Positions 18,312-63,593 of a stretch of DNA of 64,000 nucleotides are shown here, piece after piece (positions within the stretch are counted from its first letter, which is position 1; each line of letters opens with the position of its first letter). The position numbers and the translations under genes are program-made. The notes below the pieces were generated by a model. It was not told where the DNA came from and did not search any database. It worked only from the letters and a program-made list of their open reading frames with translations. Source of the stretch: Mobula hypostoma (Eukaryota); contig NC_086110.1 in assembly GCF_963921235.1 (NCBI RefSeq), positions 9,734,001 through 9,798,000 of the forward strand, in the 5' to 3' direction.

Positions 18312-18442
18312 TCATGTTGAAAACAGAAGCTGCGCCAATTCTTTCCATCGCCGTAAATTCCACCAGATACAAGAATTCTCGAGAACGAAAAGGTGTTCGT
18401 GAGAAAACAGATGCATGGTCAACTGGGTATGGTCCTCTTCAT
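18312..18442 (-). CDS. Gene A (NKp30/NCR3-like Ig receptor) exon 5, terminal cytoplasmic exon
   Basis: Acceptor cattatatttcgttccAG, homologous to the exon 4 acceptor. The phase-1 frame is open: (N)EEDHTQLTMHLFSHEHLFVLENSCIWWNLRRWKELAQLLFST*. A phase-0 reading gives MKRTIPS*. Confidence 0.55.
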
Positions 18443-19400
18443 CTGGAACGAAATATAATGACACGATAATTCAGCACCATTTGCGGAATTGTTTACGCAA
18501 TGATTACAAATATACTTATCATAGTACCCAATGTGCCAGATCCCCAGAATCTCTTAAGCTAAAGAAACTAATGGACTAGTTTAAGCGCAACGTGACACGA
18601 TGGCACAATAGTTATCTGATCTATCACTATTCCAGTGACCGCGGTTCAATTATGATCTCAAGAGCTTCAACATACTCCGGGTGATCGTATCTGTTTCTCA
18701 AAGGTCCCCAGTGTCCTCCCATATATCAAAATGATGGTGTTAAATGAATGTTTTAAAACTGCATGACGGCTTAAAAAATTACAATGATGTTTCTGAATAC
18801 AAAAGAATAATTATAGCAGCTATTATTGGAAAATGCAAATGCACACATTGTATTTTCTACAATATTTACTATGTAACCACTGTTAGCTCATTAGAAGGTA
18901 TTCACTATGTAGCCATGACTTTTGACCTGTTCACTATTAATTCATGAAGAGAACTAGAATGAAATCAAATAGAAAGATAACGGTGGCGGGTAAGATGATG
19001 AAATATGTGGCAGTATGTCAATGCAAGGCTAATTAAGAAAAAACTGTGGTTAGGGATGAGAAGACATATGGTCCAAAAATGTACACTAGGACATAATTGA
19101 ATTGGGGTGTAAAACAATAGTGGAAAGTCAAGAGCGGATGTATTGATGATATGTAATCACAGGCCGATTGGATATGATAATGTAACTAAGATAGGAGAAT
19201 TGCTATAAAAAATGCTATGTACAAGGTTCGACGTGCAGTCAGCATCTAGCTTTCTGATTGTCTCAGCTTTGATTTGCAAATTAAAGTTTAAAACTACTTC
19301 AAAGATTTTCTGCGTCACCTTGGCGTTTGTGAGAAACCACGACACTATCAACACAAGAGATAATTTAGTTTACGTCATTTAAGTACATATGATGAAACGC

Positions 19401-19401
19401 A

Positions 19402-19436
<35 letters not shown>
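19401..19436. repeat. (AAAT)n microsatellite
   Basis: Directly visible. Confidence 0.98.
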
Positions 19437-19598
19437 GTTCCAAGTAGACGTCTTAACACGATTTGATTGGTTGTTAGCGACAGGAAGAATAAGCAGACTA
19501 CGTAAGCACAAACTGTTGTAAAAAGACTCTCGTTAATTCTGTCCAGATCAGATCGTCCAGAATATACGGCGTTATATGTACGCATGAACAAACCTCAC

Positions 19599-19631
19599 TA
19601 TGATTCGCTTTCGTAAAGCATTCCTGGTTAC
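19599..19631 (-). CDS. Gene A exon 4, short cytoplasmic exon
   Basis: Acceptor tcattatatttcgttccAG; 33 nt, phase 1-1, encoding (G)NQECFTKANH; donor GTGAGG. An alternative donor GTTTGT lies 5 nt further. Confidence 0.55.
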
Positions 19632-19829
19632 CTGGAACGAAATATAATGACATAAAAATGTAGCACCATTCGTAAAATTGTTAACGAAATGATCGTAAAG
19701 ATACTTATAGTAGCACACAAATGTCAGCATCTGCAGAATCTCTTGTATTGGCTTTTGCCCAACGTGTCACAGGAGCGCAATAGTTATTCCACCGCAACCA
19801 CTTCCAGCGATCTCAGGTCCGTTGTGATC

Positions 19830-20377: not shown

Positions 20378-20491
20378 CCTTTCTTTCCTGCTTTCGGCAC
20401 AGCGTCCCAGTGACGATCATTAGCAGTAGAATCGCCGGTCCGCCCATCGCACAACGGAGAAACCAAATGGAAGGAGAGTTGCCAGAGGAAC
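20378..20491 (-). CDS. Gene A exon 3, transmembrane exon with intramembrane Arg
   Basis: Acceptor ttctttcaaacttccAG, donor G|GTATGA; 114 nt, phase 1-1, open. Encodes (G)SSGNSPSIWFLRCAMGGPAILLLMIVTGTLCRKQERK: a hydrophobic span with R near its N-terminal end, then a basic stop-transfer segment. Confidence 0.85.
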
Positions 20492-20879: not shown

Positions 20880-22085
20880 GAGGCTGTACTTGATCTGGCA
20901 CTGGAAAATTAACCTGGTCAGGTGTCAGATCTCGCAGTGGGAGAGCATTTTGGAGATAGTGATCACAATTCTATCTCCTTTACCATAGCATTGGAGAGGG
21001 ATAGGAGCAGACAAGTTAGGAAAGCGTTTAATAGGTGTAAGGGGAAATATGCAGCTATCAGGGAGGAACTTGAAAGCAGAAACTGAGAACGGATGTTTTC
21101 AGGAAAATGTACGGAAGAACTGTGGCAAATGTTCACGGGATATTTACGTGGAGAGAACTGGAGTTGAGATACTTTATATGTCTCAAATGGAAATCTGATG
21201 GAAACTAGAAACGGAACGGAAACCCCTGCAAACAGTTCAACTGAAAGGTACGGAATCACTGGCAAAGAATGATTTTTTTTCCAAATGGAACACAGAAGAA
21301 ATATCAATACACGTGGGTGGACATGCAAATACAAAGTACATTAAATGTAAAAATTGGTTGCAGAGCAGTGTTTTAATTAATGCCTGTCTTGCAACCCACA
21401 GAACTCGATATTATTTAAAATCCCTTTAAATTCTAGACTAGTGAGTCATACTTCAGTGTTAGGTAAGTTGATGAAGATCCTGAGAGACAGGATTTATGAA
21501 CATTTGGAGAGGCATAAAATGATTAGGAATAGTCAGCATGGCTTTGTCAAAGGCAGGTCTTATGAGCCTGATTGAATTTTTTGAGGATGTGACTAAACAC
21601 GTTGAACCATAGATGCAGTGTATATGGGTTTCAGCAAGACATTTGATAAAGTACCCCATGCAAGGCTTATTTAGAAAGTAAGGAGGATTATTCTGAATGG
21701 AAGTCGGTGAGCAGTGGTGTGCTGCAGGGATCTGTTCTGGGACACCTACTCTTCGTGATGTTTATAAATGATGTGGATGAGGAAGTGGAGGGATAGGTTA
21801 GTAAATTTTCTGCTGACACAAAGGTTGGGGGTGTTGTGGACAGTGTGGAGGGCTGTCAGAGGATACGGGGGACATTGATAGGATGAAAACTGGGCTGAGA
21901 AGTGGCAGATGGAGTTCAACCCAGATTAGTGTGAGGTGGTTCATTTTGGTAGGTCAAATATGATGGCAGAATATAGCGTTCATGGTAAGACTCTTGGCAG
22001 TGTGGAGGATCAGAGAGATCTTAGAGTCCCAGTCCACAGGGCACTCAAAGCTGCTACACAGGTTGACTCTGTGGTTCAGAAGGTA
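20880..22085 (+). mobile_element. CR1 ORF2 fragments in gene A intron 2 (20880-21160 and 21432-22085)
   Basis: AVLDL.L.N.PGQVSDLAVGEHFGDSDHNSISF; RNSQHGFVKGRS; DAVYMGFSKTFDKVPH; VLQGSVLG; FSADTKVG. Antisense to gene A. Confidence 0.9.
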
Positions 22086-22148
22086 TAATTAGCGTGTTAC
22101 ATTCTATGTACTTTATAGATAATATGTTCTCCAGCTACTTTAGCTCAC

Positions 22149-22469
22149 CGTGAACCTTTAGAAGTGATCCGGTTCCATTTCTTGCAGGCGATTCTTTGCG
22201 GGTCAGTGAACACAGAAACAGTCCTGAATCTTGGACCATTACATTTTGCAACTCAAAGTACCAAGTTCTTTTACCTCTCCGACCGGAACGCTTTCTGCTG
22301 CCGGTGCTAGTCCGTTGGTATTCATTCTCGCCCTGTTTCCACCAGTAGACTTTTACCCAGGATTCATCCTGAGAAATGGGAAATACGCAGTAGAACGTGA
22401 CGTTCTCTCCTTTGGATACCACCGCTTCTTTGGGCGATTGAGATACATTGAACGAAGTTTGATTCGCAG
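22149..22469 (-). CDS. Gene A exon 2, germline-joined VJ-type Ig V-set domain
   Basis: Acceptor ctttcctttttAG, donor G|GTGAGC; 321 nt, phase 1-1, open. Encodes ANQTSFNVSQSPKEAVVSKGENVTFYC...VKVYWWKQ...FELQNVMVQDSGLFLC...NGTGSLLKVH: B-strand Cys, C-strand Trp, DSGxxxC and a J-like GxGxxLxV in one exon. Confidence 0.92.
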
Positions 22470-22612
22470 CTAAAAAGGAAAGGTTAATTTTAGTTAAATT
22501 GAATTTTTCATAAATGTAACCTACAGCTGATTCACAGTTAGCTTCAATATTGTGTAATCTAATCGGACATTGATTGATAAATTAAAACACGCAGAAATGA
22601 ATAAAGCTTTAC

Positions 22613-22652
22613 CTATGTAAATGATCCCATTGACTGCCAGAAAGAGAAACAT
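22613..22652 (-). CDS. Gene A exon 1, leader peptide
   Basis: ATG at 22652-22650, MFLFLAVNGIIYI, donor G|GTAAAG (phase 1), then a 143-bp intron to the V exon. Joins in frame (G+CT = Ala). Confidence 0.8.
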
Positions 22653-22699
22653 ACTTGCTCACATACTGCCTAACAGATTCAATGAGTCTGTTGATGTGC

Positions 22700-24153: not shown

Positions 24154-25011
24154 TGCTCAAGGAGATCTGTTTTTTGTGAGAATGATGTAATGGTCTTTTG
24201 GAGGTCACCTGATGTGATTTTCCCGCCAATGTGAGGTCACGTGATGACATGTGCCCCGTGACTATATAAGGGTCGACTCAGGTGACGCAGTAGGTTTTTG
24301 AGTTTGTACATTTCCAGGTAGAACGTGTTGTGCCTCCGTTTCTGTTGCGTGTTTGTTTTTGTGACGTAGTTTCATTTTTAAAATGGTTGTACGTTCTGTT
24401 GAAAGATTCCATATTACTTGGACTGGAAATTTGTGGCTGGAAGTGCCAATTCCGACAGTTTTGAAGGGAGAGTGAAGAATTCATCGAAGTGAAGAATCGA
24501 GAGAAGTCGGCATCATTTGGCAGTTTAATAAAGGATCGACCTTATTGAGTCTTCGTTGGAGAGAACCTGCATTGAGATAACTCTTGCAATAGCGCAATGA
24601 GTTCATGCAAAAAGGCTCTCGCTCTCTAAAAGGAATTTAAGGTCAGTCGATTTAAACTGTTTATTTTCAGCATCGGGAATCCTGTGGACAGAACTGGCAG
24701 TAAAGGTGCGTAGGTGAAGAAATCTTTCTCCAGAGAAGTCTCTCCTAATTGATGCGTAAAACTGTTGGACTTTTGAAGTTATCACTTTAAGAACTATATC
24801 TGACTGTATCACTTTAAGAACTGTTTCCGCATTAAACGCTTTAAGAACCAGAGCCGAGTGGCGAGCTGGTGAACAACTGCGTACCTGTTAACCTCCGGTT
24901 AAAGTTTTCCTTTGTTTTTTTTTCCGTATCGTTTATACGTGTTTAATAAATGTTTGGTTGTTTTTATATAACCTGTCTCGATTAATATTCATTGTTGCCT
25001 GTTACGTAACA
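24154..25011 (+). mobile_element. Solo LTR of the same family as the 39070-44290 element
   Basis: Colinear with 39077-39939 and 43464-44290. TATA-like TATATAA at 24263-24269, AATAAA at 24945-24950, ends GTTACGTAACA. The extreme 5' end is degraded and no clear TSD was seen. Confidence 0.92.
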
Positions 25012-25284
25012 TCTGTCCCTTTCTTTCATCTGCGATCTCCATAGTTATTTCTACATTCACCCAAAACCACAAAATCCTATCTCCTTCTCTTCCTCCACTC
25101 AATCCATCTGCTGGTTTTTTGAAACGCATCACCCACTGGCTCCTCTTTCTAATCCTATCTGCCTTCTCCCACTGCCATCACTTGATTCCACGCTCTACCT
25201 TGCTCACACATGAGGTTCTATCGTCTTCAGCCCGATGTCTCTTTCACCAGTCACCTCTGGTAACCCCAGATTAATACAGCAGTG

Positions 25285-25650
25285 TTTCTTCATCAGTCGT
25301 CAGTGGTGTCTGGAGACAAAACGTAATAACATTGTAAGAATTATGACATAGAAGGCAACAGTATACTCACTATATCAAAATTTCCCCCAAATATCTATGG
25401 GTTGACATGGGAAACATCTATAGAACCAGATCACAGATAGCAAGTTCCTGTGATGTGTTTCCTGTCCTGCAATCTGGGATATATCACTTCAAAGTAAAAC
25501 ATCAGCAACAGCTTATTGCAGATGCAAGTTGCTCTCAGCTTACCATTTTCTGTCATTGTTATTCCTAAAAAAACTGTGTGCAATATATAAACATTGCCAG
25601 AATATTGTCCTAACCGTGGTGCAGATAGCCTTCATTCAACTACACGATAT
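25285..25650. repeat. Unidentified repeat, direct copy of ~35535-35935
   Basis: Shared blocks tgtttcttcatcagt, tatgacatagaaggcaaca, aacatctatagaaccaga, tgtgcaatatataaacat, ggtgcagata.ccttcattcaa. Confidence 0.85.
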
Positions 25651-26313: not shown

Positions 26314-27371
26314 TGTTACGTACCCCGTAACTGGGTTGCCAAACCAGCAGAAATGGATCACTCAGTTGGAGTCTGGATTACTAGAACTAAGAAAGTTTTA
26401 TTAAAGAAACAAGCAACACAGTACTCTAATCAAAAAGGATACTAAATGCAACAGTTCAGCAATGATAAACATACATGTACACAGAATTAAGATAACAAGA
26501 TTAATCAAGCTCTATCGTTCTCTAGGGGTAAATGACCAGTTTCAAAGTGACACAAAGTCCAGTTCAATTTAGTTCAGTTCACAGTAATTGTTGCCATGGT
26601 GATGGACAGTGGGGGGGAGGGAGAGAGAGAGCAAAACGAATGAATATTCAACACAGCTTCCACACAGACCTTCGCAGTCAGCTTTCGGGTGAGTCCTTTG
26701 TGATGTCATCTGAGGTCACCGACCGTGACCCCTCTGTTTCCAGATACGATCGTTTCCCTGCGCTGAACCTGGCACCCAGGCAAGGGCGGACACACACCAG
26801 GTTCCCGCCGATCGTGCCTTTCCACCCTGTGCGTCTATGGCTTGATCCCGCGATCAGCCATCCAAAAGCTTCCCACTGACTTGTGAGAGGCGCACCGCTT
26901 CCAGGGTCTCGTTACCTCGGGTGTCGTGTGTGTCCTGCCTTAGCGAACCTGTCCCTTTTTATCCCCCTGCTGGGGTATCGCCTGTCCATCACTTCAAACA
27001 GTTCAGGGTTCAAAGGGGGAGCCGCTCTTGACAGCTCCCGCCTTCTGTTACTCTCTCTCCCGTCCCTTCATTACACATCTCCAAATGCTGCTCCATTGTT
27101 TTCCTTATCTCTCTCTACTCCTGAAGACAGGTGGCAGACCAACTGCTGATCACACAGGACAGCTAACATCTTAATCTATTGTGTATTCTTGTCACACTTC
27201 CCCCTTTAAGGATTTTTACCAGGGGTTAAAAATTACAAACATGAATACATTATTTGATACACACACAAATATACATCTTTATCAGTTATTTGGCTAATAC
27301 AGCGAGTTTGAAGTTGTCAACACCTGACAGACAGTCAGCCATCACATTTTCTGTTCCTTTTATATGTGTTA

Positions 27372-28813
27372 TTAATAATCCCTCAGACCAGGCTCCAATT
27401 TAGCAAACTTCATAGTGGCCAAAAACACTGATGAATTGCGATCAATGTAAACTCTCATTTGGTTTTGTCCCGGACCACAATAACAAGGGTTGTCCCATTC
27501 CGACTTAGTTTTCTCTCGCAAGAACTTAGTAGGAGGGGGAGGGGTAGTGACCGCAGAGTTATTGCAAAACTTCCTACAGTACTCCACCATCTCCAAGAAC
27601 CTTCTGAGGGCCCTCTTGTCTGTCGGGGTTGGGAGGTCAGCGATAGCCTGCACTGTAGCTTGCATCGCTGCCAGCTGCCCCTGTGTCACCACAATTCCCA
27701 GGTAAGTGACCTTCATGCGGCCGAACTCATTTTTTTCAAGGTTCACTATCAAGCTGGCTTCAGACAGGCGTATTAAATTGCCAATACACACCTCTGTGTT
27801 CGTCAGCCCTTTAGTCACTGAATTACTCATTCTATATGGATGTTGCTCACTAGGCTGACCTATTGAAACAGACACCACCCAACGTCCCAGTTCTTTGCAT
27901 CGCCTCAGGACAATCAAACACACGGGTGCGAGTCATTTAATTACTTCTCCTAAAGAGTCGCTTTGTTCGGGGATTAAGGGAGAGACCTTATCAGCAGACC
28001 TGGCCAAAACAATAGCCTTCTCCCATCTGGTCAATACCATACTCATCTTTTCAAAATGGTTTTTTTCTCTTATCGGGGGGACCCTAGCTTCATTGATTTC
28101 CGTGCTAACACCGACTAGGTTTGTTAGCATATCAAAAGCCTGTGACCATCTCAGTTCGCATCGGTCATAATAACATCCTTCCCCCTGGGCAGCTGGTAAA
28201 CCTCTTTCATGGTTCCACCAACTGTTCCCTCCAGTACTGCAAAATGTCCACCGGGGGGTACCTTGTGGGCCAGGTTAAAAACCTCATCCCCATAACTCTT
28301 TTGCACCACCCCCCATTCCTCATCTGCGGGCACGGTACTTGGTCTACCTTGCTTCCTTAGCACTTCCTCCTCCACACAATAGCCTATTTGTTCCCTTGTT
28401 AAGTCTGTGTCAGAGAGAGCTGTCTCTGCCAAAACCATCAGCCCCTCGTCTCGCTCCTGCGTCTGCACAAATTCTTTCCTGGCTACTGCTATGTCTGTCT
28501 CAGCTCCCTCACTACCTCTTGTCTCACTACACTCCTTCTTTTCATTTTCTACCACCTTCTCGTACAAGGTTGGCAGAAAGGTCTCAGCTAAATTTACTAC
28601 CGCAGCCCCATGATGAACCTGTGAGTCCATGGGCGGGGCATCAATGCTGGCAGGCTGACCTGTCAATCTCACGACTGGGAACACGATTCCCCCGGCGACG
28701 TCATTACCGAGCAAGACTTCCACGCCTTTCATCGGTAATTCGGACCTCAACCCGATCGTGACTAGTCCAGAGACCAGGTTGCTTTGTAAGTGTATCTGGT
28801 GCAAAGGGACCAA
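27372..28813 (-). pseudogene. pol remnants of the Gmr1-type element (protease end, integrase N-terminus, RT thumb/connection)
   Basis: LLGNDVAGG (protease); LAHKVPPGGHF (integrase HHCC start); VNLEKNEFG..VTYLG...PTPTDKRALRRFL (RT C-terminus). No YxDD motif remains. Confidence 0.85.
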
Positions 28814-30281
28814 CTCTGTCCCTTCCCCAACACCTTTGACCTTTACCTCCCCAGTCTGGGTCTGAGCTAAACTCTAATGCAATCTTCAGTATTAGTGACT
28901 GACACGCTCCCGTGTCTCTCCAGATCCGCACTGGAACTGGTTTTAACCCCTCCTTCACTGACACTAATCCGGCCGAGATAAACTTCTCGTGCCCTTCCTG
29001 AACTTTGGTAGACCTGTCCTTCCCTAGCAGTTCATTTACCAGCTCGATACAGCCAGTCAAAATCGCTGTTTTTCCTTTTCCCGTCTCCTTCTTTGGGGCA
29101 AAGCACCTGGACGCAAAGTGTCCGACTTTCCCACAATTATAACAGACGACCCCAGGAGACTTCCTACCAGACTGCTCCCGGTCTACCTTATCCTTCTCAC
29201 TAGTCCCCGGCTTACTTTCTGACTTTTCCGGCGGACTCTCCCCGCCATCCTGACTACCCTTCTGGTAGCCTTTACTCGGGGCAAACTTCATTTTATGCGT
29301 TAACGCATACTCATCCGCTAACTTAGCAGCTGCGGCTAACGTGGCTGCCTCTTTCTCATCTAGGTAGGGTCTCATACCTTCAGGGACACAACCTTTAAAC
29401 TGCTCAATCAGGATCAGATGTAGCAGTCTGTCATAATCCCCCTCTACCCCCTTCGAAGCGCACCAACGCTCACAATATGTCTGCATCTCACGGGCAAACT
29501 CTGAATACGTGCTCCTCGCATTCCAGAACCTCTGCCGGTATGCCTCCGGGACCAACTCATAAATCCTGAGGATGGCCTCTTTCACCACCTCATACCTCTG
29601 GGCATCTTCCGCGGACAAAGCTGAGTAAGCTTCTTGGGCTTTCCCTTTCAGTACACTCTGAAGCAAAACAACCCACTTATCCCTTGGCCAGTCCTGACTT
29701 ATAGCCACTTTTTCGAAATGGAGAAAGTACCGATCCACGTTGGTATCGTCAAATGGGGGAACCAGCCTAACCTCCTGGGTCGCCCGGAACCCTCCACCTT
29801 GGTTCGGCATGAGCCCCTGCTCTGCCCTTATCTTTAACTTCTCCAGCTCGAATTCCCTTTCCCTCTTCTTCTCGCTCTCTCTCTCTTCTCGCTCCCATTG
29901 CCTCTCTTTCTCTTTATCCAACTGTCTCTCCCTCTCTCTCTCTTGCCTTTCTAACTCTCTCTCTTTCTCCCGCCTTTCTAACTGCTTCTCTTCTTGTTCT
30001 AACTGCCGTACCCGGAACTCGTGCTCGAGTCTCAGTTTTTCAAGCTGTACCTGTACCGCGTCTCCGGCAGGTTTTTCAATAGACACCACCCCCAGCTCGC
30101 CTTGGGGAAACACACCTTTAGATACATAGTGCTCTACGATAGCTCTGTATATCTCCTCTCTCCTCATTGTCGACTTCCCCTTAGCAAGATTCAACAGTTT
30201 GGCCACAGCTACCAATTCCGATTTCCTGGCATCCTCTAATGCTTCCAAGGTTGGCGCCTTTATAAATTCCTCAGCCTCCAT
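28704..30281 (-). CDS. Retrotransposon Gag (coiled-coil, SCAN-like capsid, CCHC knuckle) running into the protease start
   Basis: 525-aa ORF: WVVLLQSVLKGKAQEAY...YELVPEAYRQRF, CYNCGKVGHFASRC, RDTGACQSLIL. A frameshift at ~28860 ends the pol reading. Confidence 0.9.
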   Translation of the reverse strand: MEAEEFIKAPTLEALEDARKSELVAVAKLLNLAKGKSTMRREEIYRAIVEHYVSKGVFPQGELGVVSIEKPAGDAVQVQLEKLRLEHEFRVRQLEQEEKQLERREKERELERQERERERQLDKEKERQWEREERESEKKREREFELEKLKIRAEQGLMPNQGGGFRATQEVRLVPPFDDTNVDRYFLHFEKVAISQDWPRDKWVVLLQSVLKGKAQEAYSALSAEDAQRYEVVKEAILRIYELVPEAYRQRFWNARSTYSEFAREMQTYCERWCASKGVEGDYDRLLHLILIEQFKGCVPEGMRPYLDEKEAATLAAAAKLADEYALTHKMKFAPSKGYQKGSQDGGESPPEKSESKPGTSEKDKVDREQSGRKSPGVVCYNCGKVGHFASRCFAPKKETGKGKTAILTGCIELVNELLGKDRSTKVQEGHEKFISAGLVSVKEGLKPVPVRIWRDTGACQSLILKIALEFSSDPDWGGKGQRCWGRDRVGPFAPDTLTKQPGLWTSHDRVEVRITDERRGSLAR

Positions 30282-31387
30282 TTCTGCTGTTTGTCTTTTC
30301 TTTCTTTCGGGAATTTTGACCCAATCAATTTACTCCGTCCCAAATTTAGCGTTCAAAATCGCGGACGAGAACCCCACTTATGTTACGTACCCTGTAACTG
30401 GGTTGCCAAACCAACAGAAATGGATCATTCAGTTGGAGTCTGGATTACTGGAACTAAGAAAGTTTTATTAAAGAAACAAGCAACACAATACTCTAATCGA
30501 AAAGAATACTAAATGCAACAGTTCAGCAATGATAAACACACATGTACACAGAATTAAGATAACAAGATTAATCAAGCTCTATCGTTCTCTAGGGGTAAAT
30601 GACCAGTTTCAAAGTGACACAAAGTCCAGTTCAATTTAGTTCAGTTCGCAGTAATCGTTGCCATGGCGATGGACAGTGGAGAGGAAGGAGAGAGACAGCA
30701 AAACGAATGAATATTCAACACAGCTTCCACACAGACCTTCGCAGTCAGCTTTCGGGTGAGTCCTTTGTGATGTCATCTGAGGTCACCGACCGTGACCCCT
30801 CCGTTTCCAGATACGATCGTTTCCCCGCGCTGAACCTGGCACCCAGGCAAGGGTGGACACACACCGGGTTCCCGCCGATCGTGCCTTTCCACCCTGTGTG
30901 TCTATGGCTTGATCCCGCGATCAGCCATCCAAAAGCTTCCCACTGACTTGTGAGATCGCACCGCTTCCAGGGTCTCGTTACCTCAGGTGTCATGTGTGTT
31001 CTGCCTTAGCGAACCTATCCCTTCTTATCCCCCTGCTGGGGTATCGCCTGTCCATCACTTCAAACAGTTCAAGGTTCAAAGGGGGAGCTGCTCTTGACAG
31101 CTCCCGCCTTCTGTTACTCTCTCTCCCGTCCCTTCATTACACATCTCCAAATGCTGTTCCATTGTTTTCCTTATCTCTCTCTACTCCTGAAGACAGGTGG
31201 CAGACCAACTGCTGATCACACAGGACAGCTAACATCTTAATCTATTGTGTATTCTTGTCACATCGTAATTTCTTTATCTTCCTCTCGCCCCACTATTCCT
31301 GAACACCCCCAAGCCTCCCTTTTCCATAGACACAACCAATCCTCTTTTATCTTCTGATCCTAACTCTCATCCATGCCGGGCATAGAC

Positions 31388-34982: not shown

Positions 34983-35534
34983 GCATAGACTCTCCACCCC
35001 ACACCAATGACCCCTTCTCCCATCTTCAACCCTCCTCAGCTTCATGGACACCCAGCCCTGGTCTTCTGCCTGCTCTGGACCTTTTCATTGCCAACCGCCG
35101 ACGGGACATCATCCGTCTAGAAACTCGCATTTCTACCTCCTACCCAAGATCCGCACACCACTGATATAGTTAGATCATTTGTTCCAGCTTGTTCCTGGCT
35201 GAAAAGAACAACTAAGAATAAAATGACTACCGCTAGTCTTAAGAGTCAGATGACTCGGCAGTACAATTTCTCAGGCAAGACAGAATACAAACAAGCAGTG
35301 AAGCGTTACTGTGTCAAACTTTCGACAAATACTACGACGGAATGAATGGGGTTAAATACTATCACAATAAAACAATAATTAGCTGACGTGCATATTCACG
35401 AGCGCAATTGCTGAATCCAATGCACTGCCAAATCCCTGGTTGTGGCACCATCATCTTGAGCCCAATGTCACTTCCATTGAAATTCCATCAATCACCTCTA
35501 TTGACCACTATGATTAATTAAACAACACTAGCAT

Positions 35535-36415
35535 TGTTTCTTCATCAGTGCTCAGCAGTGTTCCGGGACAAACCGTGATAACACAGTGAGAACTATGACA
35601 TAGAAGGCAACAAACTCTTTTATAGTATACCCACTGTATCGAAAGTTCCTCCAAATACCTATGGATTGTCATGGGAAAACATCTATAGAACCAGAGTGTA
35701 GACAGTACCTTCCTGTGGGGTGTTTCCTATCCTGAATTTGAGTGTGCTCAATCTGGATATAACAATGCAAAGTAGAACATCAACAATAACTTATCGGAGA
35801 TGCAAGGGGCTTCAAGATAACCATTTTCTCTCATTATTATTCCTAAAACAACTATGTGCAATATATAAACATCGCCAGAATATTGCCCTAATCGATGGTG
35901 CAGATAACCTTCATTCAATTACACGATATTTCACAGTTTACGACTCTTTGTCGATTACTGAAGCAAATTCTGAGGTACTTATGTATCAACAATTTGTACG
36001 TAAAGAGTACTGCGATAATTTGCAGGGAAAACAGATATTGAGGTAAAACAATGGTTTTCAGATAATAGTACATGTAAGTATTTTGTTCTCCCATCACAGT
36101 GCAGCGTTACACAGGAGCAACACTTTGAGCATTGCAGGGCGTGTCTTCTGGGCAAAATTAACACCGTGCATAACATTGTCATATGAGGTACAGAAAACAT
36201 AAATGGAAAGCTGGTAGTCTTGATTTTATGGACGTACTATCACTCATTCATATCAACACTGCATAAGGTACTGTTCTGTAGCTATAATTGTATCCCACTG
36301 AAAGGTGTTGGTATTGGCGTAAATGTAGGTTAAATGGAAACAAAATAGATTTTAGTTTATGCAGTGGTATCAGAATGGTATTATGCAAAGTGCAAATGTA
36401 TTTTAAGTATTGTAC
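35535..36415. repeat. Longest copy of an unidentified repeat family (other pieces at 650-990, 25285-25650, 26170-26313)
   Basis: Three different sub-segments align by eye to three other places in the window, in both orientations. Confidence 0.8.
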
Positions 36416-44445: not shown

Positions 44446-44847
44446 CATTCTAGATGGCTTGCCGCTGAAGGGCTCCAGACTCGTTATTCCTGCATCTCTG
44501 CCACCTAAGAGCAAGTAAATGCTTGTGGTGGCCTGGTCTGAGTCCACAGCTGGGAGATTATGTAAATAAGAATAGACTGTTACCGCTGAAGTATTGAGGG
44601 AGACATGAGATAGCAAACAAGTATAATTTGTGTTGTTCTGAGCTGGCTGCAGCACTGTCAAGTGTTTGAAACTCATGAAGTCCCTGGGTGTTCTTCATTG
44701 TCTTGGCCTGTATGTCCATAACTACTTCAGTGCCACTTTTATACCAAGTAGGCGAGAAGTTATTGGGATAAAGGGCAACTGTTTCACACACAATAATGTG
44801 GGTGGTAGCTGAATTCTTTTTCACAAATATCTTTAGTGGAGTTGGTA
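44446..44847 (-). pseudogene. Gene B: Ig C1-set exon (possibly with a decayed TM segment), frameshifted
   Basis: Acceptor ttccattatctgttccgccgcAG, phase 1. Frame 1: VPTPLKIFVKKNSATTHIIVCETVALYPNNFSPTWYKSG...GLHE. After a frameshift near 44670: KHLTVLQPAQNNTNYTCLLSHVSLNTS...SIYLLLGG...SRM. Donor GTGAGT. C..YP...W and YTC..SH.SL are C1 signatures. Confidence 0.85.
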
Positions 44848-45069: not shown

Positions 45070-45918
45070 GAGTGCAAAGACTTCATCCAATAACCATGAC
45101 AACAGGCATCACGTCGAAATTCTAAATTTGTTTCACACATGTAGTGAAGAGTAAACTGCAGTTCAATTATGTGAAGATATCAGGACACTGGAGCAGGGAT
45201 CCAATTGCAGACCCAGTACTGTGCACACAGTGATATTAATTGATCAACAAATCCCAAGGTGCAAACAAAGTCGGCGTCAAAGTTCAGGCAGAGTTCAAAA
45301 CATCCAGAGAAAACCAAAAACCAGAATCGGGAAACAGGAGAGTTGATATTCAGATGGACAAAGAACAGATACGAATGCTGGAAAGGCTCAGGGAAATTCA
45401 TTGGCACAATCTGGCGACAAACAGGTGAAAACACAGGACTAAAATACACTGAGCAATAGACAGAGAGGCAGATGATAGGTGGAGCACAATGAGACAGAAG
45501 TGGCAGCAAAACAGGTAATAACGAAAAACAAGTGAGAGGCGGAGTACTCAGTAATACAGGGGCCGGAGTAGAGCAGGAGTGGGGACAGGAGCACATAGGG
45601 CATGAAAACAAACAAGAGCACATGGCAATACAAAACCACAGACTGATGGCTGGGGGAAAACACACAAAAATACAAATTTCAACTGGAGGTACCAACAGAA
45701 AATGAGTAAGTAAGCGGCTTTATAGTAACATACTCTGTAGAGGTACAGAAGGTGGTGAATATAATATGATTTTGTAATCTCCAGATAGCTTCACCATGCT
45801 ATTTGCAGACTATTGAGGGAGTGTGCAGCTCAGTTTCGACTTTTCCACGCTCCTATTCATAATGCCAAGTAGTTGCCAGCATTGAGTTGCACGCTCTTTC
45901 AAATCCATTACATTTAAT
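45070..45918 (-). pseudogene. Gene B: degenerate Ig V exon split by a solo LTR
   Basis: Upstream of the LTR: ...ATQ...KLSCTLPQ*SANSMVKL(fs)WRLQ, with the same Cys-to-Trp spacing (15) as gene A (CVFPISQDESWVKVYW). Downstream of the LTR: LHIIELQFTLHYMCE (E/F strands with YxC). It lies ~220 bp upstream of the C1 exon. Exon ends are approximate. Confidence 0.55.
45178..45697 (-). mobile_element. Solo LTR (Gypsy-type, 520 bp)
   Basis: On the minus strand it begins TGTTGGTACC and ends CCTGATA (CA degenerated). Near-TSD GAAGA at 45173-45177 and GAAAA at 45698-45702. Confidence 0.75.
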
Positions 45919-45959
45919 CTATAGTTCACGGAATGTCAAACAGTAAATACAGCAGTCAG

Positions 45960-51275: not shown

Positions 51276-54200
51276 TTACATTAAATGAAAATATTGAATA
51301 AAAGATCTCCAAGTCTGTTCAAATTTAAATGAGGAGTCATAAAGATTGCTTCTAATTTTCTCCAGATTCAAGCATAATATCATCTGAGAAAACCAAAAAA
51401 AGGTAGTTGGAGCATTAAGCTCTTTCCAATGTTGTAAGATACATCTTTTCGCCATTAAAGTAAGAAATGCAATCATTCTACGGGCTGAAGGGGAGAGATT
51501 ACTGGAAATTTTAGGTAGTCCAAAGATAGCAGTAATAGGGTGAGGAGAGATATCTATATTCAATACCTTAGAGATAATATTAAAAATGTCTCTCCAAAAA
51601 GTTTCCAAAGTAGGGCAAGACCAAAACATATGAGTTAAAGAGGCCATCTGCCCCGGACATCTATCACAAAAAGGATTAAAATGAGAATAAAAGCGCGCTA
51701 ACTTATCTTTGGACATATGTGCTCTATGAACAACTTTAAATTGAATTAGGGAATGTTTAGCACAGATAGAGGAAGTATTGACTAATTGTAAAATCTGCCC
51801 CCAGTCATCCACGGAAATGGTAAACCCCAATTCCTGTTCCCAATCTACCCTAATCTTATCAAATGGAGCTTTCCTAAGTTTCATAATAATATTATAAATC
51901 ATAGCCGATGCACCTTTCTGACATGGATTAAGGTTGATTATAGTATCTAAAATGTATGTAGGAGGAAGCATTGGAAAGGAGGAAAGTATAGTACTTAGGA
52001 AATTTCTAACTTGTAGATATCTAAAAAAATGTATTCTTGATAAGTTATATTTATTAGATAATTGTTCAAAAGACATAAGGGAACCATCTAAAAATAAATC
52101 CAAAAACCGTGAAATACCCTTAGTCTTCCAAGTTTGAAAAGCACGATCCGTAAAAGAGGGAGAAAAAAATATGTTACCTAAAATAGGAATCGCTAACCCA
52201 AATTGGTTAAGATCAAAAAAATTTCTGAATTGAAACCAAATACGCAAGGTATACTTAACTATCAGGTTAGACACCTATTTAAGGCGTTTCCAATCAAAAG
52301 GAAGAGAGGAACCTAAAATAGAGTCAAGTGTAAAACCCTGAACAGATTGTAATTCCAATACTACTCATTTAGGAATGGATAGTATATCCTGGTCCAGTAA
52401 CCAGAATTTCATATGTCGAATATTAATTGCCCAATAATAAAATCTAAAGTTAGGTAATGCTAAGCCTCCATCTCTCTTAGCTTTCTGTAAATGTATTTTA
52501 CCCAGTCTCGGGCTTTTATTCTGCCAAATAAATGAAGAAATTTTAGAGTCAACTTTAGCAAAAAAAGATTTTGGAACAAAGATTGGTAATGCCTGAAATA
52601 TATATAAAAATTTTGGCAAAAAAACATCATAACTGCATTAATACGACCAATCAAAGTTAAATATAAAGGAAACCATTTAGATGAAAGTTGAGTAATATGG
52701 TCTATTAATGGTAAAAAGTTAGTCTTAAATAAATCTTTATATTTACAAGTAATTTTAATCCCAAGATATGAAAAATAATTATTAATCAATTTAAATGGAA
52801 ATTTATAATATAAGGGAAGTTGTTTATTAATCGGAAAGAGTTCACTCTTACTAAGATTTAATTTATAACCTGAAAAAAGACCAAATTGTGCTAATAACTC
52901 TAAAACAGCCAGGATAGATTTTTGAGGATTAGAAATATATAAAAGTAAATCATCAGCATAGAGTGATAATTTATGGGACTTTAAGCCCCGAGTTATCCCA
53001 GTAATATTTGGAGATTCTCGAATGGCAATTGCAAGAGTTTCTAATGCAATATCAAATAATAAGGGATTAAGAGGACAACCTTGTCGAGTACCTCAAAAAA
53101 GAGGGAAAAAAGGTGAACTTAAAGAGTTAGTATGGACCGAGGCCACAGGAGAATAATATAAGAGTTTAATCCAGGATATAAATTTCGAGCTAAAATTAAA
53201 CATTTCAAGCACCTTAAATAAATAAGGCCATTCTACTCTATCAAAAGCTTTCTCGGCATCTAAAGTGATAACACATTCAGGAACATTTTGTGAGGGAGTA
53301 TAAACGATATTTAACAGTGTACGAATATTATAAAAAGAGTAACGACCTTTAATAAAACCCGTTTGGTCTTCTGAAATAATAGAGGGAAGTACTTTTTCTA
53401 ATCTATTTGCTAATAACTTAGAAAAAACTTTAGAATCAACATTTAATAAGGTATTGGTCTATAAGATGCACATTGAGCAGGATCTTTATCCTTCTTTAAT
53501 ATTAAAGAAATTGACGCTCTATTAAAAGATTCAGGAAGTTTACCAAGTTTCAATGAAGCCTCAAAAACCCTACAGAGCCAAGGGATTAATGAAGGAGCAA
53601 AACATTTATAAAATTCTACGGTAAACCCATCAGGGCCAGGAGCTTTCCCCAAATTCATAGAGAAAATAACATTCTTAATCTCATCCATGTTAATAGGAGT
53701 ATCTAACATAGAAGCCATATCCTGTGAAATCTCAGGGAAGTCTAAATTATCTAAAAAATCATTCATATATTTAGAATCTCGAGGAGACTCTGATTGATAT
53801 AAGGAAGAGTAAAAATCACAGAAGGTTTGATTAATCCCCACATGATCAAGTATCAGTTGATCATTTTGGTTATAAATCTGATTAATTTGAGATTTAGCAT
53901 AATTAGACTTCAATTGATTAGCCAACAGTTTGCCAATTTTGTCACTGTGTACATAAAATTCACTTCTTGTTTTCTTTAATTGGTTTACAATCGAGGACGA
54001 GAGTAATAAACTGTGTTCCATTTGAAGTTCAGTTCTTTGTTTATATAACTCCTCAGAAGGAGCTATAACATATTTCTTATCAATTTCCTTAATCTTGTCC
54101 ACAATTACCAACTCCTCCTGCTTCTGCTTCTTCCTCAAAGCAGCAGAATACGAGATAATCTGACCACGAATATAAGCTTTAAAAGTGTCCCAAAGAGTGT

Positions 54201-55050
54201 TAACAGAAATATCCTCTGTATGGTTAATTGTAAAAAAAAGATCAATCTGTTCATTCATAAAGTTAACAAAGTCCGAGTCCTGAAGCAACAGCGAATTAAA
54301 ACGCCATTGTCTATTATTTTGTATATTGGCCAGAATTTTAATAGAAAGCTTAAGTGGAGCATGATCCGAAATGGTTATAGAATCATAATCACATTTAATC
54401 ACTGAGGAAATAAGACGAGAATCAATAAAGAAATAACCAATTCTTGAATAGGAATGATGAACATGTGAAAAAAAAGAAAAATCTTTTTCCTGAGGATGCA
54501 AAAAGCGCCAAATGTCCGTCGACCCAGAATCAGAAAGGAATGAATTAATCAAAGTTGCAGATTTATTAGGTAAGGTCCGTAAAGGAGCCGAACGGTCCAA
54601 AGCTGGAGACAAACAGGTATTAAGATCTCCGCCCCAGATCAATGAAAACTCATTCAAATTCAGAAACTGATGAAATAATGATTTATAAAATTCCGGACAG
54701 TCCATATTAGGAGCATAAACATTAACCAAAACTACTTTTTTATTGAATAGTAAACCACTAACCAATAGAAATCTACCATTCGGATCAGAAATAATATCAT
54801 GTTGTATAAAAGTAACTGAGGAGTCTATAAAAATAGAGACGCCTCGAATCTTAGCATTGGAGTTCGAATGAAACTGTTTTCCCTTCCAGAATTTAAAAAA
54901 ACGTAGTCTGTCCCCCCTCCGCACATGGGTCTCTTGTAAGAATAAAATTTGTGCTTTAAGTCTCCGGAACACTTTAAAAACTTTTTTCCTTTTAATAGGA
55001 TGATTAAGACCATTAGTATTCCAGGAGACAAAATTAATAATAGACTCCAT
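51276..55050 (-). pseudogene. L1 ORF2 (APE-RT-CCHC), disrupted
   Basis: SWNTNGLN...LFLQETH, NVYAPN, GGDLN, SDHAPL, KAPGPDGFTVEFYK, SLDAEKAFDRVEW, QGCPLNPLLFDIALE, ITLYADD, CDRC...HMFWSC. Several frameshifts and stops. Confidence 0.93.
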
Positions 55051-55765
55051 AAACCCTAAAGTCAACCCACAACAAGGAGGATTGACGATAGGCTCGACCC
55101 ACGAACCCGGAGAGGGAACAGAACATACAAGAGATACCGGGAAGAAGAACGCAACCAATACTTCAATAATGTATATAGCCCAAAAAGAAAGAAACTAAAA
55201 CGTGAAGCCCCTCCCACCACCCGCCACCCCATGACCCCAAGGCTAAATCTAACGCAGACCAGCCCGAAAGAAGCAAGCACTAAAACTACCCCCATGACTT
55301 CCGGTATACGCTCCCTAAAAAAAAAGTGTAAATATAAAAAAGATCAGCTGATTATAAAACAGTAAAAGAATAAAAAAAGATAACTCAATTAAAATAAACA
55401 CATAACAGAATAAAAGCCAGAAAATATACTTAAAAAACCGCAATAAACCCCAGACCCATGAATAAACAGAACAACAAAAAAAAAAGATTATTAACATTAA
55501 CTAGTTATAAAAACCTACAAAACAAAATAGATTTTAAAAAAACTACAAAATTTAAGGCCACAAAGGAAATACGTAAAATGACAATAAGGAAGTAACTACC
55601 CAGAATCCCCTGGGAAAAAGAAAGAAATGACGCAGTTAAAAAGAAAGTTTAGCAACCATATTAAGTAATCAAAAATAAACTTTTCTGCCCAAATAGGGCA
55701 AAAAAAAAATTAAGATCGACAAATTCACAGCCTCCGATCAACGGAGATAGTTTAAAAAATTACAA

Positions 55766-59279: not shown

Positions 59280-59750
59280 GTATTCTGTACCAGGATGCAG
59301 CCTGGATTAGAGTGCATGTCTTATAAAGGTAGGGTGAGCAGGCTAGGGCTTTTCTCTGCAGCAACAGAAGATGAGAGGTGACTTGACGGAGGTGTATAAG
59401 ACTATGTTCAGAGTGGATAGCCAGTTCCTTTTCCCCAGGACAGTAATGATCAATACCAGAGGACATGTGTTTAAGGTGAGTGGCGGAAAGTTTAGGGGAG
59501 ATGACAGAGGTCGAATGTTTTTACACAGAGAGGGTGGGTGCCTGGGGCTCACTGCTGGGGTAGTAGTGAAGGCGTATAAAATATAGACATTGAAGACACT
59601 CTTAGATAGGCAGACAGATGTGAGAAAATGGGGGTTATAGGTTATGGAGTAGGGAAGGGTTAGATTTTTATGGAAAGGTTTATATAGGTTTGCACAACAT
59701 TGTGAACCAAAGGGCTGGTACTGTGCTGTACTGTCTGATGTTCTATATTC
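59280..59750 (+). mobile_element. CR1 3' fragment
   Basis: MRGDLTEVYKTMFRVDSQFLFPR...TRGHVFKVSGGKFRGD; tail ttctatattctatg. Confidence 0.85.
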
Positions 59751-59845
59751 TATGGTCTCTGTTCCATGTTTTTTTTTCAGCCATTGCAGTGAGTATGTGC
59801 TATTCCTGTAATCTCCCTGCAGAGTGCAGTCCCACACATCAGAAC

Positions 59846-59941
59846 CCGTTTTATAACACTTCCTCATTAATAATAATAAGATAGGAATGATGAGAAAAAG
59901 AGAAGCTTTAAGCCAGAATAGGAAGAACATTTTGCGCACAC
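59846..59941 (-). CDS. Gene C: transmembrane exon with intramembrane Lys
   Basis: Acceptor ttagcatcgttacAG; 96 nt, phase 1-1, open. Encodes (G)VRKMFFLFWLKASLFLIIPILLLLMRKCYKT. The donor G|GTTCTG is weak. The charged residue sits in the same position as Arg in gene A (WLK vs WFLR). Confidence 0.65.
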
Positions 59942-59989
59942 CTGTAACGATGCTAATGCTCAACTACAAAGCATTCACCCAAATGCCAA

Positions 59990-60330
59990 CATCTTTAGTC
60001 AGCCAATGTAAAAGGAATCCCAATAATTTTTCACCTAAAAATACTGAATCAGAACACATAAAAAACAAAATATTCCACACTACAATCATGTCCAAACACA
60101 CACAAGTATTTAATTTCTGCATTCAATAGCAGAAATAGTTATATTCATTGTTTCATGAACTTATGGTAAACACCACAATATGATGTGTAGAAACTTCTTC
60201 TCTCTTTCCTCAGAGACTAATGAATATTTGTCCCTAAGGGTGGTAGGAATCAGATCTTTAGATATACTTAAGGTAGAGATGGATAAATATTTGGAAGGTT
60301 GAGGAATTAAGGGCTATGGGGAACAGACAC
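59990..60330. repeat. Local segmental duplication unit, copy 1 (paralogue at 63655-64000)
   Basis: Unique AT-rich sequence plus the same internally deleted CR1 fossil (junction gtggtaggaat|cagatcttta) occurs in both copies. Confidence 0.85.
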
Positions 60331-61473
60331 AGAAGAGGACTTGAAGCCAGCATAGACCAGCCATGATCATATTGAGTAGCTTGAGGTCCTGGTGGCTTAC
60401 TCCTGCCCCTATCTTCGTACATCTTGTGTTCTTGAGAACATGTAATGTACAATATTGCAGGTTACTGCCATTTTAGATTCAACTTGTACAAAACTTCAGC
60501 AAGTTCCTAAACTTTAAAGATGGAAACTGGGAAGACTTATACATGTGACAATAAATAGCAATGTTGCAGTGATGAAGATCAGATTGTAATCAAGAGCTCA
60601 GAAGGGAATAGATATGGATCATATGGAAAACTAGATTAGATTATAGAGATAAAGAAGGCAGAGGTCATGGAAGGATTTAGAAATATAAATGAGTATTTTA
60701 AAATAGGAAGGCAATGTCGAACAAGCTTTATGGTGTTAGGAAGTGTTGCTTGAGCTGTGTTAGGATGTAGCCCACATTGTTAATTAACAGAGATTAGAAT
60801 GAGGGAATTGAAGTGGGGATACTTTGGGACTGTCAGGTTTTGGATGGCATGCAAGTAACTGGAATTTCTGCCTCACAGCTGCAGCGAAGCAGCTTCAATC
60901 ATGATCTCTTTGTGGGGTTTGCATGTTCTCCCTATGACTGTGTGGGTTTTCTGCAGTTGCTCCTATTCTCACCCATGTCACAAAGGTGTGCTGGGAGGTA
61001 AATGACTTAGCCACTGCAAATTTCTTCTGGTGCGTAGGTGAGTGGCAGAACCTAACAGACTTGATGAAGGGTGGATACTCGATGGGCTGAATGGCCCAGT
61101 TCAATGCTGTATAAGTTATTGCTTTGTGACTCTAGAGAATATGTGAATGGAGCTCTCATCAGAATATGAACTAAAGCAGAATTGAATATAAATGTGATTA
61201 TACAGATAATCTTAGTGAAGATAATGGCAGATACCCAAAATTCATTTTCAAGTCAGACATAACACCAGGATTGTAAATAGTTTGTAATGAACTGTTGCTA
61301 GGTACTGGGATGGAATTCAGCAGCTCGGAGTGGGAAGAGTTTTTGCCAGGGACTGAAGAGATTTAGTTGGAAAATACTTATGCTCTGCCAGTACAGGATG
61401 TCAGGCAGGCAAGTGATTAGCAAGGCCTTGGCACCAACATAGCTCCTACCAGTCTCACCAATTTACAGATTCT

Positions 61474-62341
61474 GGGACATGGATAGGTTGGGTGAGTGGG
61501 CAAACTCATGGCAGATGCAATTTAATGTGGATAAATGTGAAGTTATCCACTTTGGTGGCAAAAATAGGAAAACAGATTATTATCTGAATGGTGGCCGATT
61601 AGGAAAAGGGGAAGTGCAACGAGACCTGGGTGTCATTATACACCAGTCATTGAAAGTGGGCATGCAGGTACAGCAGGCGGTGAAAAAGGCGAATGGTATG
61701 CTGGCATTTATAGCGAGAGGATTCGAGTACAGGAGCAGGGAGGTACTACTGCAGTTGTACAAGGCCTTGGTGAGACCACACCTGGAGTATTGTGTGCAGT
61801 TTTGGTCTCCTAATCTGAGGAAAGACATCTTTGCCATAGAGGGAGTACAAAGAAAGTTCACCAGATTGATTCCTGGGATGGCAGGTCTTTCATATGAAGA
61901 AAGACTGGATGAACTGGGCTTGTTATCGTTGGAATTTAGAAGATTGAGGGGGGATCTGATTGAAACGTATAAAATCCTAAAGGGATTGGACAGGCTAGAT
62001 GCGGGAAGATTGTTCCCGATGTTGAGGAGGTCCAGAACGAGGGGTCACAGTTTGAGGATAGAGGGGAAGCCTTTTAGGACCGAGATTAGGAAAAACTTCT
62101 TCACACAGAGAGTGGTGAATCTGTGGAATTCTCTGCCACAGCAAACTGTTGAGGCCAGTTCATTGGCTATGTTTAAGAGGGAGTTAGATATGGCCCTTGT
62201 GGCTACAGGGGTCAGGGGGTATGGAGGGAAGGCTGGGTTCTGAGTTGGATGATCAGCCATGATCATAATAAATGGCGGTGCAGGCTCGAAGGGCCGAATG
62301 GCCTACTCCTGCACCTATTTTCTATGTTTCTATGTTTCTAT
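61474..62341 (+). mobile_element. Young 5'-truncated CR1 (uninterrupted 254-aa ORF2 C-terminus)
   Basis: ORF 61479-62243: WQMQFNVDKCEV...LVRPHLEYCVQFWSP...LRGDLIETYKI...; tail (TTTCTATG)n. Confidence 0.95.
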
Positions 62342-62384
62342 CATGAAAGAGCTAGAGGTGAGACCAAACTGGGTGTTGTAGTAC

Positions 62385-62895
62385 GCACAGGGAGAATGTG
62401 CTGGTGTTTTTGAACAACACATACAAAATGCTGGGGGTACACAGCAGATCAGGCAGCATATATGGAGAGAAATAAACAGTTAGCGTTCTGGGCTGAAACA
62501 CTTCATCAGAACTGTAAAGGAAGTATAGAGGGAGGGGAAGGAGTACAAGCTGGTAGGTGATAGGTGAGGGGTAAGTTATGTGGGTGTGGAAGGGTGGGAC
62601 AAATAATAAGCTGGAAGAGCTAAAGCACTGAAGAAGAAGGCATCTAATAGGAGAGGGCAGTTGCCTGTTGAAAGGAAAGGAAGAGAGGAACCAAAGGGAT
62701 GTGATGGATGATCAAAAGAAAAAGAGTGAGATAGTAACAGAATGAGGAATTGAAAAATTGAAGAGGGAGGGGGTAGAAATTACCAGGTGTTAGAGAAATA
62801 AATGTTGGTATTCATGTCTACTGCCATGGTGAGGCCAAATTCAGGCTGGTGGAGCAACAACTCATATTCCACCTAAATAGCCTCCAACCTGATCC
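62385..62895 (-). mobile_element. Penelope-like terminal fragment(s)
   Basis: Terminal repeat and purine-rich tract read in reverse. A + strand EQQLIFHLNSLQPD GIY-YIG tail lies at ~62849-62895. Confidence 0.65.
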
Positions 62896-63329
62896 CTCAC
62901 AGACATCACAGGTCATAGGTTACCAACCTGAAAATGTCAATCTTACACTTATTGGGTGCTTCCTACCTACTGACCAATCCTCTGCCTGTGCCAGTATATT
63001 ATCCCCAATACTGTGGGCATGTGTCCTAACTTTTTGTGAGACAACTCTGGAAGTTCAATATATCTACTGGTTATCCACTCCAGCAGAGACTTTATCAAAA
63101 TATTCCAATAACTGAACCTCGTTGATAATGTTATGACTTTACAAATGTGCTGCTATTACATTGTTGATAATTGATTCCAATAATTTTACCAACAATAGAT
63201 GTTACCAGGCTAATTGGCCTGTGGTTACTCCCATATTGCAGGGCTTTCTACTACTCTGAAGTCTTTTGGAATGTTTGAGTATGTCTGATGGTGTGCAAGA
63301 TTAAAGCAGGCCTATTTTTATGGATTTTA

Positions 63330-63593
63330 CTGAAAGCCATTACTTCAATGTAAGGACAACAGCAGACGCTCATGGGGTGATCTGAACAATGCAGTCATAC
63401 TCATACTTCAATATAGTATCTCAAAAAGTCATGCATGATCCTCAACTAAGATTATAGGCCTTGTAAAAATAGAGTGCTGGCTTGCAGTCAACAGGAAGCT
63501 GTAAACCCACGTTGATACTCTGAGCAATCATTCTGCAGTAGCATGAGAGGTCAGTGTTGCAGAGTGACCATGCATTGCAAACTGGTCAGGACA
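63330..63593 (-). pseudogene. Possible heavily decayed Ig (C1-like) exon upstream of the gene C TM exon
   Basis: Strong acceptor ttttggttgttgttttgcAG. Frameshifted remnants TLT(S)HAT...VSTW and YEYDCIV...HP; the length is Ig-exon-like. Multiple stops. Confidence 0.3.

Follow-up and report, generated by a model that had tools for sequence, protein, structure and literature searches.

A probable activating, V-only member of a cartilaginous-fish V(J)(-C1) receptor family, with a relic C1 exon, in the genome of Mobula hypostoma

Introduction

Does a stretch of ray DNA made up mostly of retrotransposons hold a cluster of non-rearranging antigen-receptor-like genes, and is any of them likely to work? 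The question arises from 64 kb of the Mobula hypostoma genome (NCBI RefSeq assembly GCF_963921235.1, contig NC_086110.1, positions 9,734,001 to 9,798,000 of the forward strand; here, the window), in which a preliminary description had placed three gene remnants, all on the minus strand: gene A, read as an intact gene for a leader, a V(J) domain, a transmembrane (TM) segment with an arginine and a cytoplasmic tail; gene B, a V-C1(-TM) pseudogene; and gene C, a doubtful C1-like domain followed by a TM segment with a lysine. In work on how antibodies and T-cell receptors arose when the RAG transposon split an ancestral gene, non-rearranging VJ and VJ-C1 genes are examined as possible remnants of that gene (PMC12227049, PMC10751288). 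CD79, NITR, SIRP, CD8, NKp30 and PRARP have been listed as joined-VJ genes (PMC11599192), and UrIg and UrIg2 have been described as elasmobranch non-rearranging antigen-receptor relics (PMC12227049, PMC10751288).

The analysis left one gene and one relic exon: gene A and the C1 exon of gene B were recovered, while gene C and the V exon of gene B were not. Gene A, which extends on the minus strand from 22,652 to about 18,250, is a real gene, and probably a working receptor gene of activating type with a non-rearranging V domain. The reading that we favour with reasonable assurance is that it is an activating, V-only member, by loss of the C1 exon, of a chondrichthyan family of V(J)(-C1) paired receptors.

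Results and Discussion

Exon structure of gene A

The exons of gene A were located by tblastn with full-length relatives and by a hidden Markov model (HMM) of the family run against the six-frame translation. The HMM recognised the V exon (2e-66), the TM exon (1.4e-10) and the tail exon (9e-3), and tblastn with the Hypanus sabinus protein P0003, itself of activating type, matched the TM exon at 69% identity (E=1e-11) and the tail exon at 80% (E=3e-9). Exon 1 (22,613-22,652) encodes the leader MFLFLAVNGIIYI; it starts at a methionine matching Met5 of the homologues and ends at the phase 1 donor G/GTAAAG. The complete V(J) domain occupies the single exon 2 (22,149-22,469; acceptor TTTTAG, donor GTGAGC, phase 1), which lies in a stop-free stretch at 22,138-22,581 and carries the cysteine, the tryptophan, DSGxFxC and the J-like strand NGTGSLLKV. 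It scored 31.8 bits against Pfam V-set (cut-off 26). Exon 3 (20,378-20,491) encodes a short stalk and the TM segment, SIWFLRCAMGGPAILLLMIVTGTL, with the arginine near the outer end and CRKQERK following, and exon 4 (E4, 19,594-19,631) is a 38-nt tail exon, (G)NQECFTKANHSE, with the donor GTTTGT, encoding GNQECFTKANHSE. The junctions of all introns are GT-AG and the introns of immunoglobulin (Ig) type are in phase 1. With its Pfam match, family HMM match and GT-AG exon joins, gene A is thus the non-rearranging V(J) receptor with a TM arginine that had been proposed.

The V exon reads through NGTGSLLKVH straight into a GT donor, and a scan for recombination signal sequences (RSS) disclosed none adjoining it; therefore the V domain is joined in the germline and does not rearrange. 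Rearranging segments of Ig or T-cell receptor (TCR) genes, with a V that ends before the J strand and a flanking RSS, are of another kind, and the RSS-flanked segment that had been considered as an alternative identity was not found. No C1 exon was detected by HMM search or DNA comparison in the 1.66-kb intron between V and TM exons, which contains only repeat fragments resembling long interspersed nuclear elements (LINEs) at 21,431-22,066. The tail is short and has no tyrosine motifs.

Beyond exon 4 a candidate last exon, E5 (18,251-18,442), may be used; it would add MKRTIPS* or a 43-residue tail depending on the splice, the preliminary description having placed the end of the gene at 18,312. 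The only poly(A) signal for the gene is ATTAAA at 18,256. A tandem copy was observed here, since 18,443-18,556 shares 78% identity over 114 nt with 19,632-19,745 (minus strand), the end of the intron and the acceptor before exon 4, and it thereby creates a second candidate tail exon that starts at 18,442.

Some further leads were set aside. A plus-strand match at 18,320-18,406 to an inhibitory tail exon (E ~0.06) is on the wrong strand with no immunoreceptor tyrosine-based inhibitory motif (ITIM) after it and was taken as chance; so was a plus-strand match resembling F and G strands at 25,347-25,565 (E=0.01), which lacks the cysteine and GxG and sits in a repeat copied at 35,530-35,940. An AlphaFold2 (AF2) model of the gene A V domain, built from a 6-sequence alignment, had a predicted local distance difference test score (pLDDT) of 48 and was unusable.

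The cartilaginous-fish V(J)(-C1) family

The first protein search with the V domain of gene A retrieved a Hypanus sabinus protein named SIRP beta-1-like at 92% identity, and a profile search gave 38 proteins with names, whose only sources were sharks, rays and the elephant shark. The homologues come from 14 chondrichthyan genera and lie, within each species, on one chromosome. An exhaustive search of 1.84 billion representatives returned 64 clusters (50% identity) at E<=1e-30, and those clusters that were looked up and belong to the family are all chondrichthyan; the nearest matches outside this group are SIRP-alpha-like sequences from birds and coelacanth, at E ~1e-16 to 1e-18. Among the sequences found here, the family thus appears to be restricted to sharks, rays and chimaeras.

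NCBI has named its members SIRP-alpha-like, SIRP-beta-1-like, TAPBPR-like, CD276, MHC class II-like, Ig lambda-like, PD-L1-like and NCR3LG1-like. The family as a whole is therefore already modelled, under mixed and misleading names, and the earlier suggestion of a hidden cluster holds in part only: many relatives have NCBI models, whereas the product of gene A was not found among the database proteins searched, and this gene may be unannotated. No paper was found on a membrane-bound V(J)-C1 family, although work from 2012 on NKp30 and B7H6 may have called members shark NKp30.

The usual architecture is V(J)-C1, and V(J)-only forms also occur, so that the proposed coexistence of V-only and V-C1 architectures, together with features of birth-and-death evolution, was borne out for the family. 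Its second domain scored 45 bits against Pfam C1-set (cut-off 21). An AF2 model of residues 18-225 of P0004, a Mobula hypostoma member, made with a 67-sequence alignment, showed two Ig domains at pLDDT 91.8. When this V-C1 model was submitted to Foldseek, Ig light chains and TCR-beta led by E-value, and PD-L1, B7-H6, SIRP, TAPBPR and butyrophilins led by TM-score (~0.75); the model supports the fold and singles out no V-C family.

Two main signalling types were distinguished in the feature table. The inhibitory type has an uncharged TM segment and a tail of 70-150 residues with ITIM or immunoreceptor tyrosine-based switch motif (ITSM) sequences (LSYATL, TEYAEL), and the activating type has R[CS] at the outer TM border and a tail of <45 residues with no ITIM. 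On the V-domain tree, 5 changes between the two are needed among 29 scored rows. Gene A has the V pattern of the family, FYC...WWKxGE...DSGxYxC...NGTGSxLxV, in one exon, the family stalk and TM segment (GSSGxS..W..[RG]CA.GG...) and its tail exon (xEEC.TEAN), and its V domain falls in a clade (98*) with P0003, P0004 and P0005. The missing C1 domain does not exclude it, because V-only products occur in the family, namely P0002 (Narcine) and P0096 (Callorhinchus).

Two subgroups were observed besides. In P0024, P0029, P0038, P0075, P0079, P0082, P0086 and P0101 the TM segment ends in ...IIVDH, with an aspartate in or at the membrane, and the tail is short; this is a third TM type, with neither the arginine nor ITIMs. 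V-only inhibitory relatives, with V(J), TM segment and a tail of 3 ITIM-like motifs, are represented by P0054/P0158, P0067/P0137 and P0096 and were found in Heterodontus, Mobula birostris and Callorhinchus; on the V tree P0054 and P0067 stand outside the main V-C1 clade and P0096 inside it.

Gene A and its inhibitory paralogue

The closest comparisons are offered by P0004, annotated as SHPS-1-like, and by P0003, annotated as tapasin-related protein-like X1, which share with gene A the leader, V(J), stalk/TM and tail exons and are 90-95% identical to it in the V domain. Against P0004, an inhibitory V-C1 protein of the same species, the V domain of gene A is 95% identical and the TM segment and tail only ~57%, and this disparity is the signature of paired receptors. 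P0004 differs from gene A in its uncharged TM segment and its ITIM/ITSM tail; P0003 has the TM arginine motif WILRCAMG where gene A has WFLRCAMG, and the tail sequence NEECFTEANRSE is common to both. Unlike either relative, gene A is without a C1 exon, and its ancestral start codon is lost. As its V domain nests in a clade of V-C1 proteins, its V-only state is secondary.

On the favoured reading gene A encodes a type I membrane receptor with a germline-joined V(J) ectodomain, in a family that acts as paired receptors, where inhibitory members with ITIM/ITSM tails would be set against activating members with a TM arginine and a short tail. Because its V domain matches that of the inhibitory paralogue, gene A probably sees the ligand of P0004 with the opposite outcome, binding the same molecule and passing on the opposite signal. 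The TM arginine would pair with an aspartate-bearing adaptor of the FcR-gamma or CD3-zeta type that carries an ITAM (immunoreceptor tyrosine-based activation motif). In mammals NKp30, NKp46, Fc-alpha-RI and SIRP-beta signal via an Asp-bearing ITAM adaptor.

Is gene A still a working gene?

Several observations weigh against a working activating receptor. The ancestral start codon is directly followed by a stop, the ATG-TGA pair lying at 22,659-22,664 (minus strand) where homologues read MSAS or MSSS, and tblastn accordingly aligned M*ASMFLFLAV with MSSSMFLFLAV of P0004. Since ancestral codon 2 is TGA, translation must start at the next in-frame methionine (22,652), only 6 nt downstream of this start-stop. 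It is from the sequence that translation from the downstream methionine, and expression of the gene as such, are predicted, and gene A may have been freshly disabled. The 3' end is ambiguous as well, with three possible tails and products of 178-202 aa; reading through the E4 donor leads to a stop at 19,500 and the 202-aa product. In the YxC motif the canonical tyrosine is replaced by phenylalanine, and adaptor pairing and ligand, though likely, are drawn by analogy from mammalian receptors only.

Taken further, these features would make gene A a recently dead pseudogene, in which the nonsense mutation at codon 2 and the loss of C1 mark a decaying V-C1 copy, like gene B but younger. Such a state would accord with the ATG-TGA at the ancestral start, with a V-TM intron that has repeat fragments in place of a C1 exon, with the duplicated and ambiguous 3' exon region and with the failure to find a matching protein in the databases searched. 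However, the remaining exons are open and every splice site is intact, the V domain is 95% identical to that of a functional paralogue and retains the structural cysteine and tryptophan, the in-frame methionine 4 codons downstream is also present in P0004 (MSSSM), and V-only products are known elsewhere in the family. We regard recent death of the gene as possible but doubtful, and a probably working gene A as the better account. The claim that gene A is intact must be qualified at the ancestral start. The start-stop was also noted for its own sake, as a configuration that could throttle translation or mark recent inactivation.

Comparison with known receptor families

Searches of PDB sequences were made with the V-C1 form, with V alone and with a V profile, and the top 60 matches of each were ranked. 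For P0003, representing the V-C1 form, the best solved structures were SIRP-alpha, UrIg2, Ig heavy chains and TAPBPR; for V alone they were the V domain of shark IgNAR (6e-8 with the profile), TCR alpha/beta V and the V domain of PD-L1. None of these top-60 lists contained NKp30.

A rival view takes the family to be the SIRP family of cartilaginous fish, with gene A as a SIRP-beta-like activating member. In SIRP-alpha and SIRP-beta-1, as in the family, the V domain has a J-like strand and a C1-set domain comes after it, and they are the best tetrapod sequence match. The first structure matched by P0003 is SIRP-alpha (2wng, 2e-15), aligned over both V and C1, the nearest representatives outside Chondrichthyes are the SIRP-alpha-like proteins of birds and coelacanth, and the pairing of ITIM-bearing and activating members is common to both. 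Yet SIRPs have three Ig domains, V-C1-C1, where the family has V-C1 or V only; the TM charge of SIRP-beta is a lysine, used with DAP12 in the activating forms, and that of gene A an arginine; and the similarity between the two groups is only ~20-25%. Moreover, Hypanus has a separate SIRP-like gene, P0147, with the J strand GSGTEVTI and on another chromosome, and SIRPs stand on very long branches outside the family in the V tree. We therefore consider a SIRP identity unlikely and keep to a chondrichthyan family of its own.

The preliminary description had invoked NKp30/NCR3, and gene A could accordingly be the ray orthologue or co-orthologue of that receptor, binding a B7H6-like ligand. The architecture is indeed the same, a single V domain with a GxGxxLxV strand, a TM arginine and a short tail; some distant members of the family are named NCR3 ligand 1-like, which places B7H6-like genes in the gene neighbourhoods of the family; and the V-C1 model matches B7-H6 well in fold. 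The resemblance is nonetheless met by a V-only state that is secondary in gene A, whose V sits inside the V-C1 clade (98*) and whose relatives, in contrast to NKp30, carry a C1 domain and ITIM tails. SIRP-alpha, UrIg2, IgNAR V, TCR V and PD-L1 stand in the PDB rankings, from whose top 60 NKp30 chains are missing, and among the named hits no family member was called NCR3-like by NCBI. Orthology with NKp30 is thus very improbable and its label was dropped for gene A, the V-only member of the chondrichthyan family.

Among the known relics, UrIg and UrIg2, known from elasmobranchs only, resemble the family in that one or more C1-type domains follow a VJ exon that does not rearrange (PMC12227049). 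UrIg2 is the second-best PDB match of P0003 (5e-15), the similarity to 9dmx being mostly in the C domains. The two differ in plan, as UrIg and UrIg2 have V-C1-C2-C3, whereas a TM segment and no more than one C1 are found in gene A and its relatives. UrIg2 V-C1-C2-C3 crystallised as a disulfide-linked dimer (PMC12227049), and UrIg is described as secreted only (PMC12227049), unlike the family, which is membrane-bound with signalling motifs. The V domain of IgNAR is short and without a clear C'' strand, as is that of gene A, and an IgNAR-type cluster named Antigen receptor was the nearest neighbour of gene A V in a language-model comparison; RAG, however, builds IgNAR V out of V, D and J segments, while gene A V lies in a single germline exon without an RSS.

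A bolder reading combines all parts and is a distinctly long shot: as the activating counterpart of P0004, gene A would be functional and unannotated, having arisen by C1 loss with its V kept 95% identical, and among surviving non-rearranging relatives the short, germline-joined V of the family would stand closest to the IgNAR/TCR-type V. Were it true, gene A and P0004 would be an activating/inhibitory pair like those that arose from pathogen decoy pressure in mammals, and the family would join UrIg as a candidate for a relic of the pre-RAG antigen-receptor gene.

Gene B, a relic C1 exon

Gene B consists of a lone C1-set exon at 44,569-44,847 on the minus strand, VPTPLKIFVKKNSATTHIIVCETVALYPNNFSPTWYK...NYTCLLSHVSLNTSAVTVYS, recognised by family HMM, blastp and tree. 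The family HMM matched it as two pieces (E=3e-24 and 4e-11), and with an X at the break blastp gave E=1e-40 and 67% identity to P0014, the range being 59-67% for C1 domains of the family. The break is a frameshift with a 2-nt deficit, seven nucleotides at 44,665-44,671 standing against three codons in the homologues, and the position-equivalent donor is CAG/GCC and not GT. The exon groups with the C1 domains of P0003, P0004 and P0005 (99*) on a long branch of 0.31.

No second V, TM or tail exon was found in the window with two family HMMs of different breadth (E<=50 and E<=20). A V exon said to be split by a long terminal repeat (LTR) at 45.0-45.9 kb gave nothing with family HMMs or Pfam (E<=10) and has no DNA similarity to the V exon of gene A, and the LTR proposed at 45,183-45,719 occurs only once in the window. 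Of the V-C1(-TM) pseudogene first described there is left, then, a frameshifted C1-set exon upstream of gene A on the same strand, with V and TM undetectable. Gene B is what remains of a sister copy, a dead C1 exon surrounded by retrotransposon insertions; an LTR element (39,070-44,294) starts ~270 bp downstream of it.

A dead exon of this kind speaks for turnover of genes within the family and, taken together with the V match between gene A and P0004, provides direct evidence of paired-receptor evolution with gene turnover. The family is large, in these searches confined to cartilaginous fish, and annotated by machine under names that mislead; what is new is an activating-type, V-only and possibly unannotated copy with a V domain nearly matching that of an inhibitory paralogue, together with the dead C1 exon. 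Gene A and P0004 form a concrete pair for work on ligand and signalling.

Gene C

Gene C does not exist. The region at 56-64 kb matched neither family HMM, and 13 open stretches at 59.3-63.7 kb had no Pfam Ig match. The proposed TM segment with a lysine (59,850-59,963, minus strand) is unsupported as an exon; it is a hydrophobic stretch closing an open frame of 206 codons, most of which runs antisense to a LINE 3' fragment at 59,288-59,753. The tentative C1-like region (63,445-63,644, minus strand) gave no Ig signal with Pfam or the family HMMs.

Mobile elements of the window

Retrotransposons make up most of the 64-kb window. LINE open reading frames (ORFs) for endonuclease and reverse transcriptase are found at ~31.4-34.9 kb and 51.3-55.2 kb. 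The LINE at 51,276-55,158 (minus strand) has long open frames, a 571-aa ORF bearing the endonuclease and a 332-aa piece with a zf-RVT domain, and was possibly active recently. Further LINE and Gypsy fragments fill 1-18 kb.

An LTR retrotransposon at 26,314-31,066 is a young insertion, as its LTRs are 96% identical; its gag ORF (28,704-30,281, minus strand) encodes 525 aa with SCAN-like and CCHC zinc-knuckle domains. The second LTR retrotransposon, that at 39,070-44,294 on the plus strand, contains gag and integrase between LTRs that are 86% identical (39,070-39,943 and 43,457-44,294). These LTRs, which flank the gag/integrase element at 40-43 kb, are two of three copies of an ~870-bp element, present in one orientation at 85-89% identity; the third, at 24,154-25,012, is solitary and lies 1.5 kb upstream of the gene A leader. 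Last, a direct duplicate of ~310 bp (82%), with no protein or repeat identity found, occurs at 60,012-60,318 and 63,684-63,999, its copies being 3.68 kb apart.

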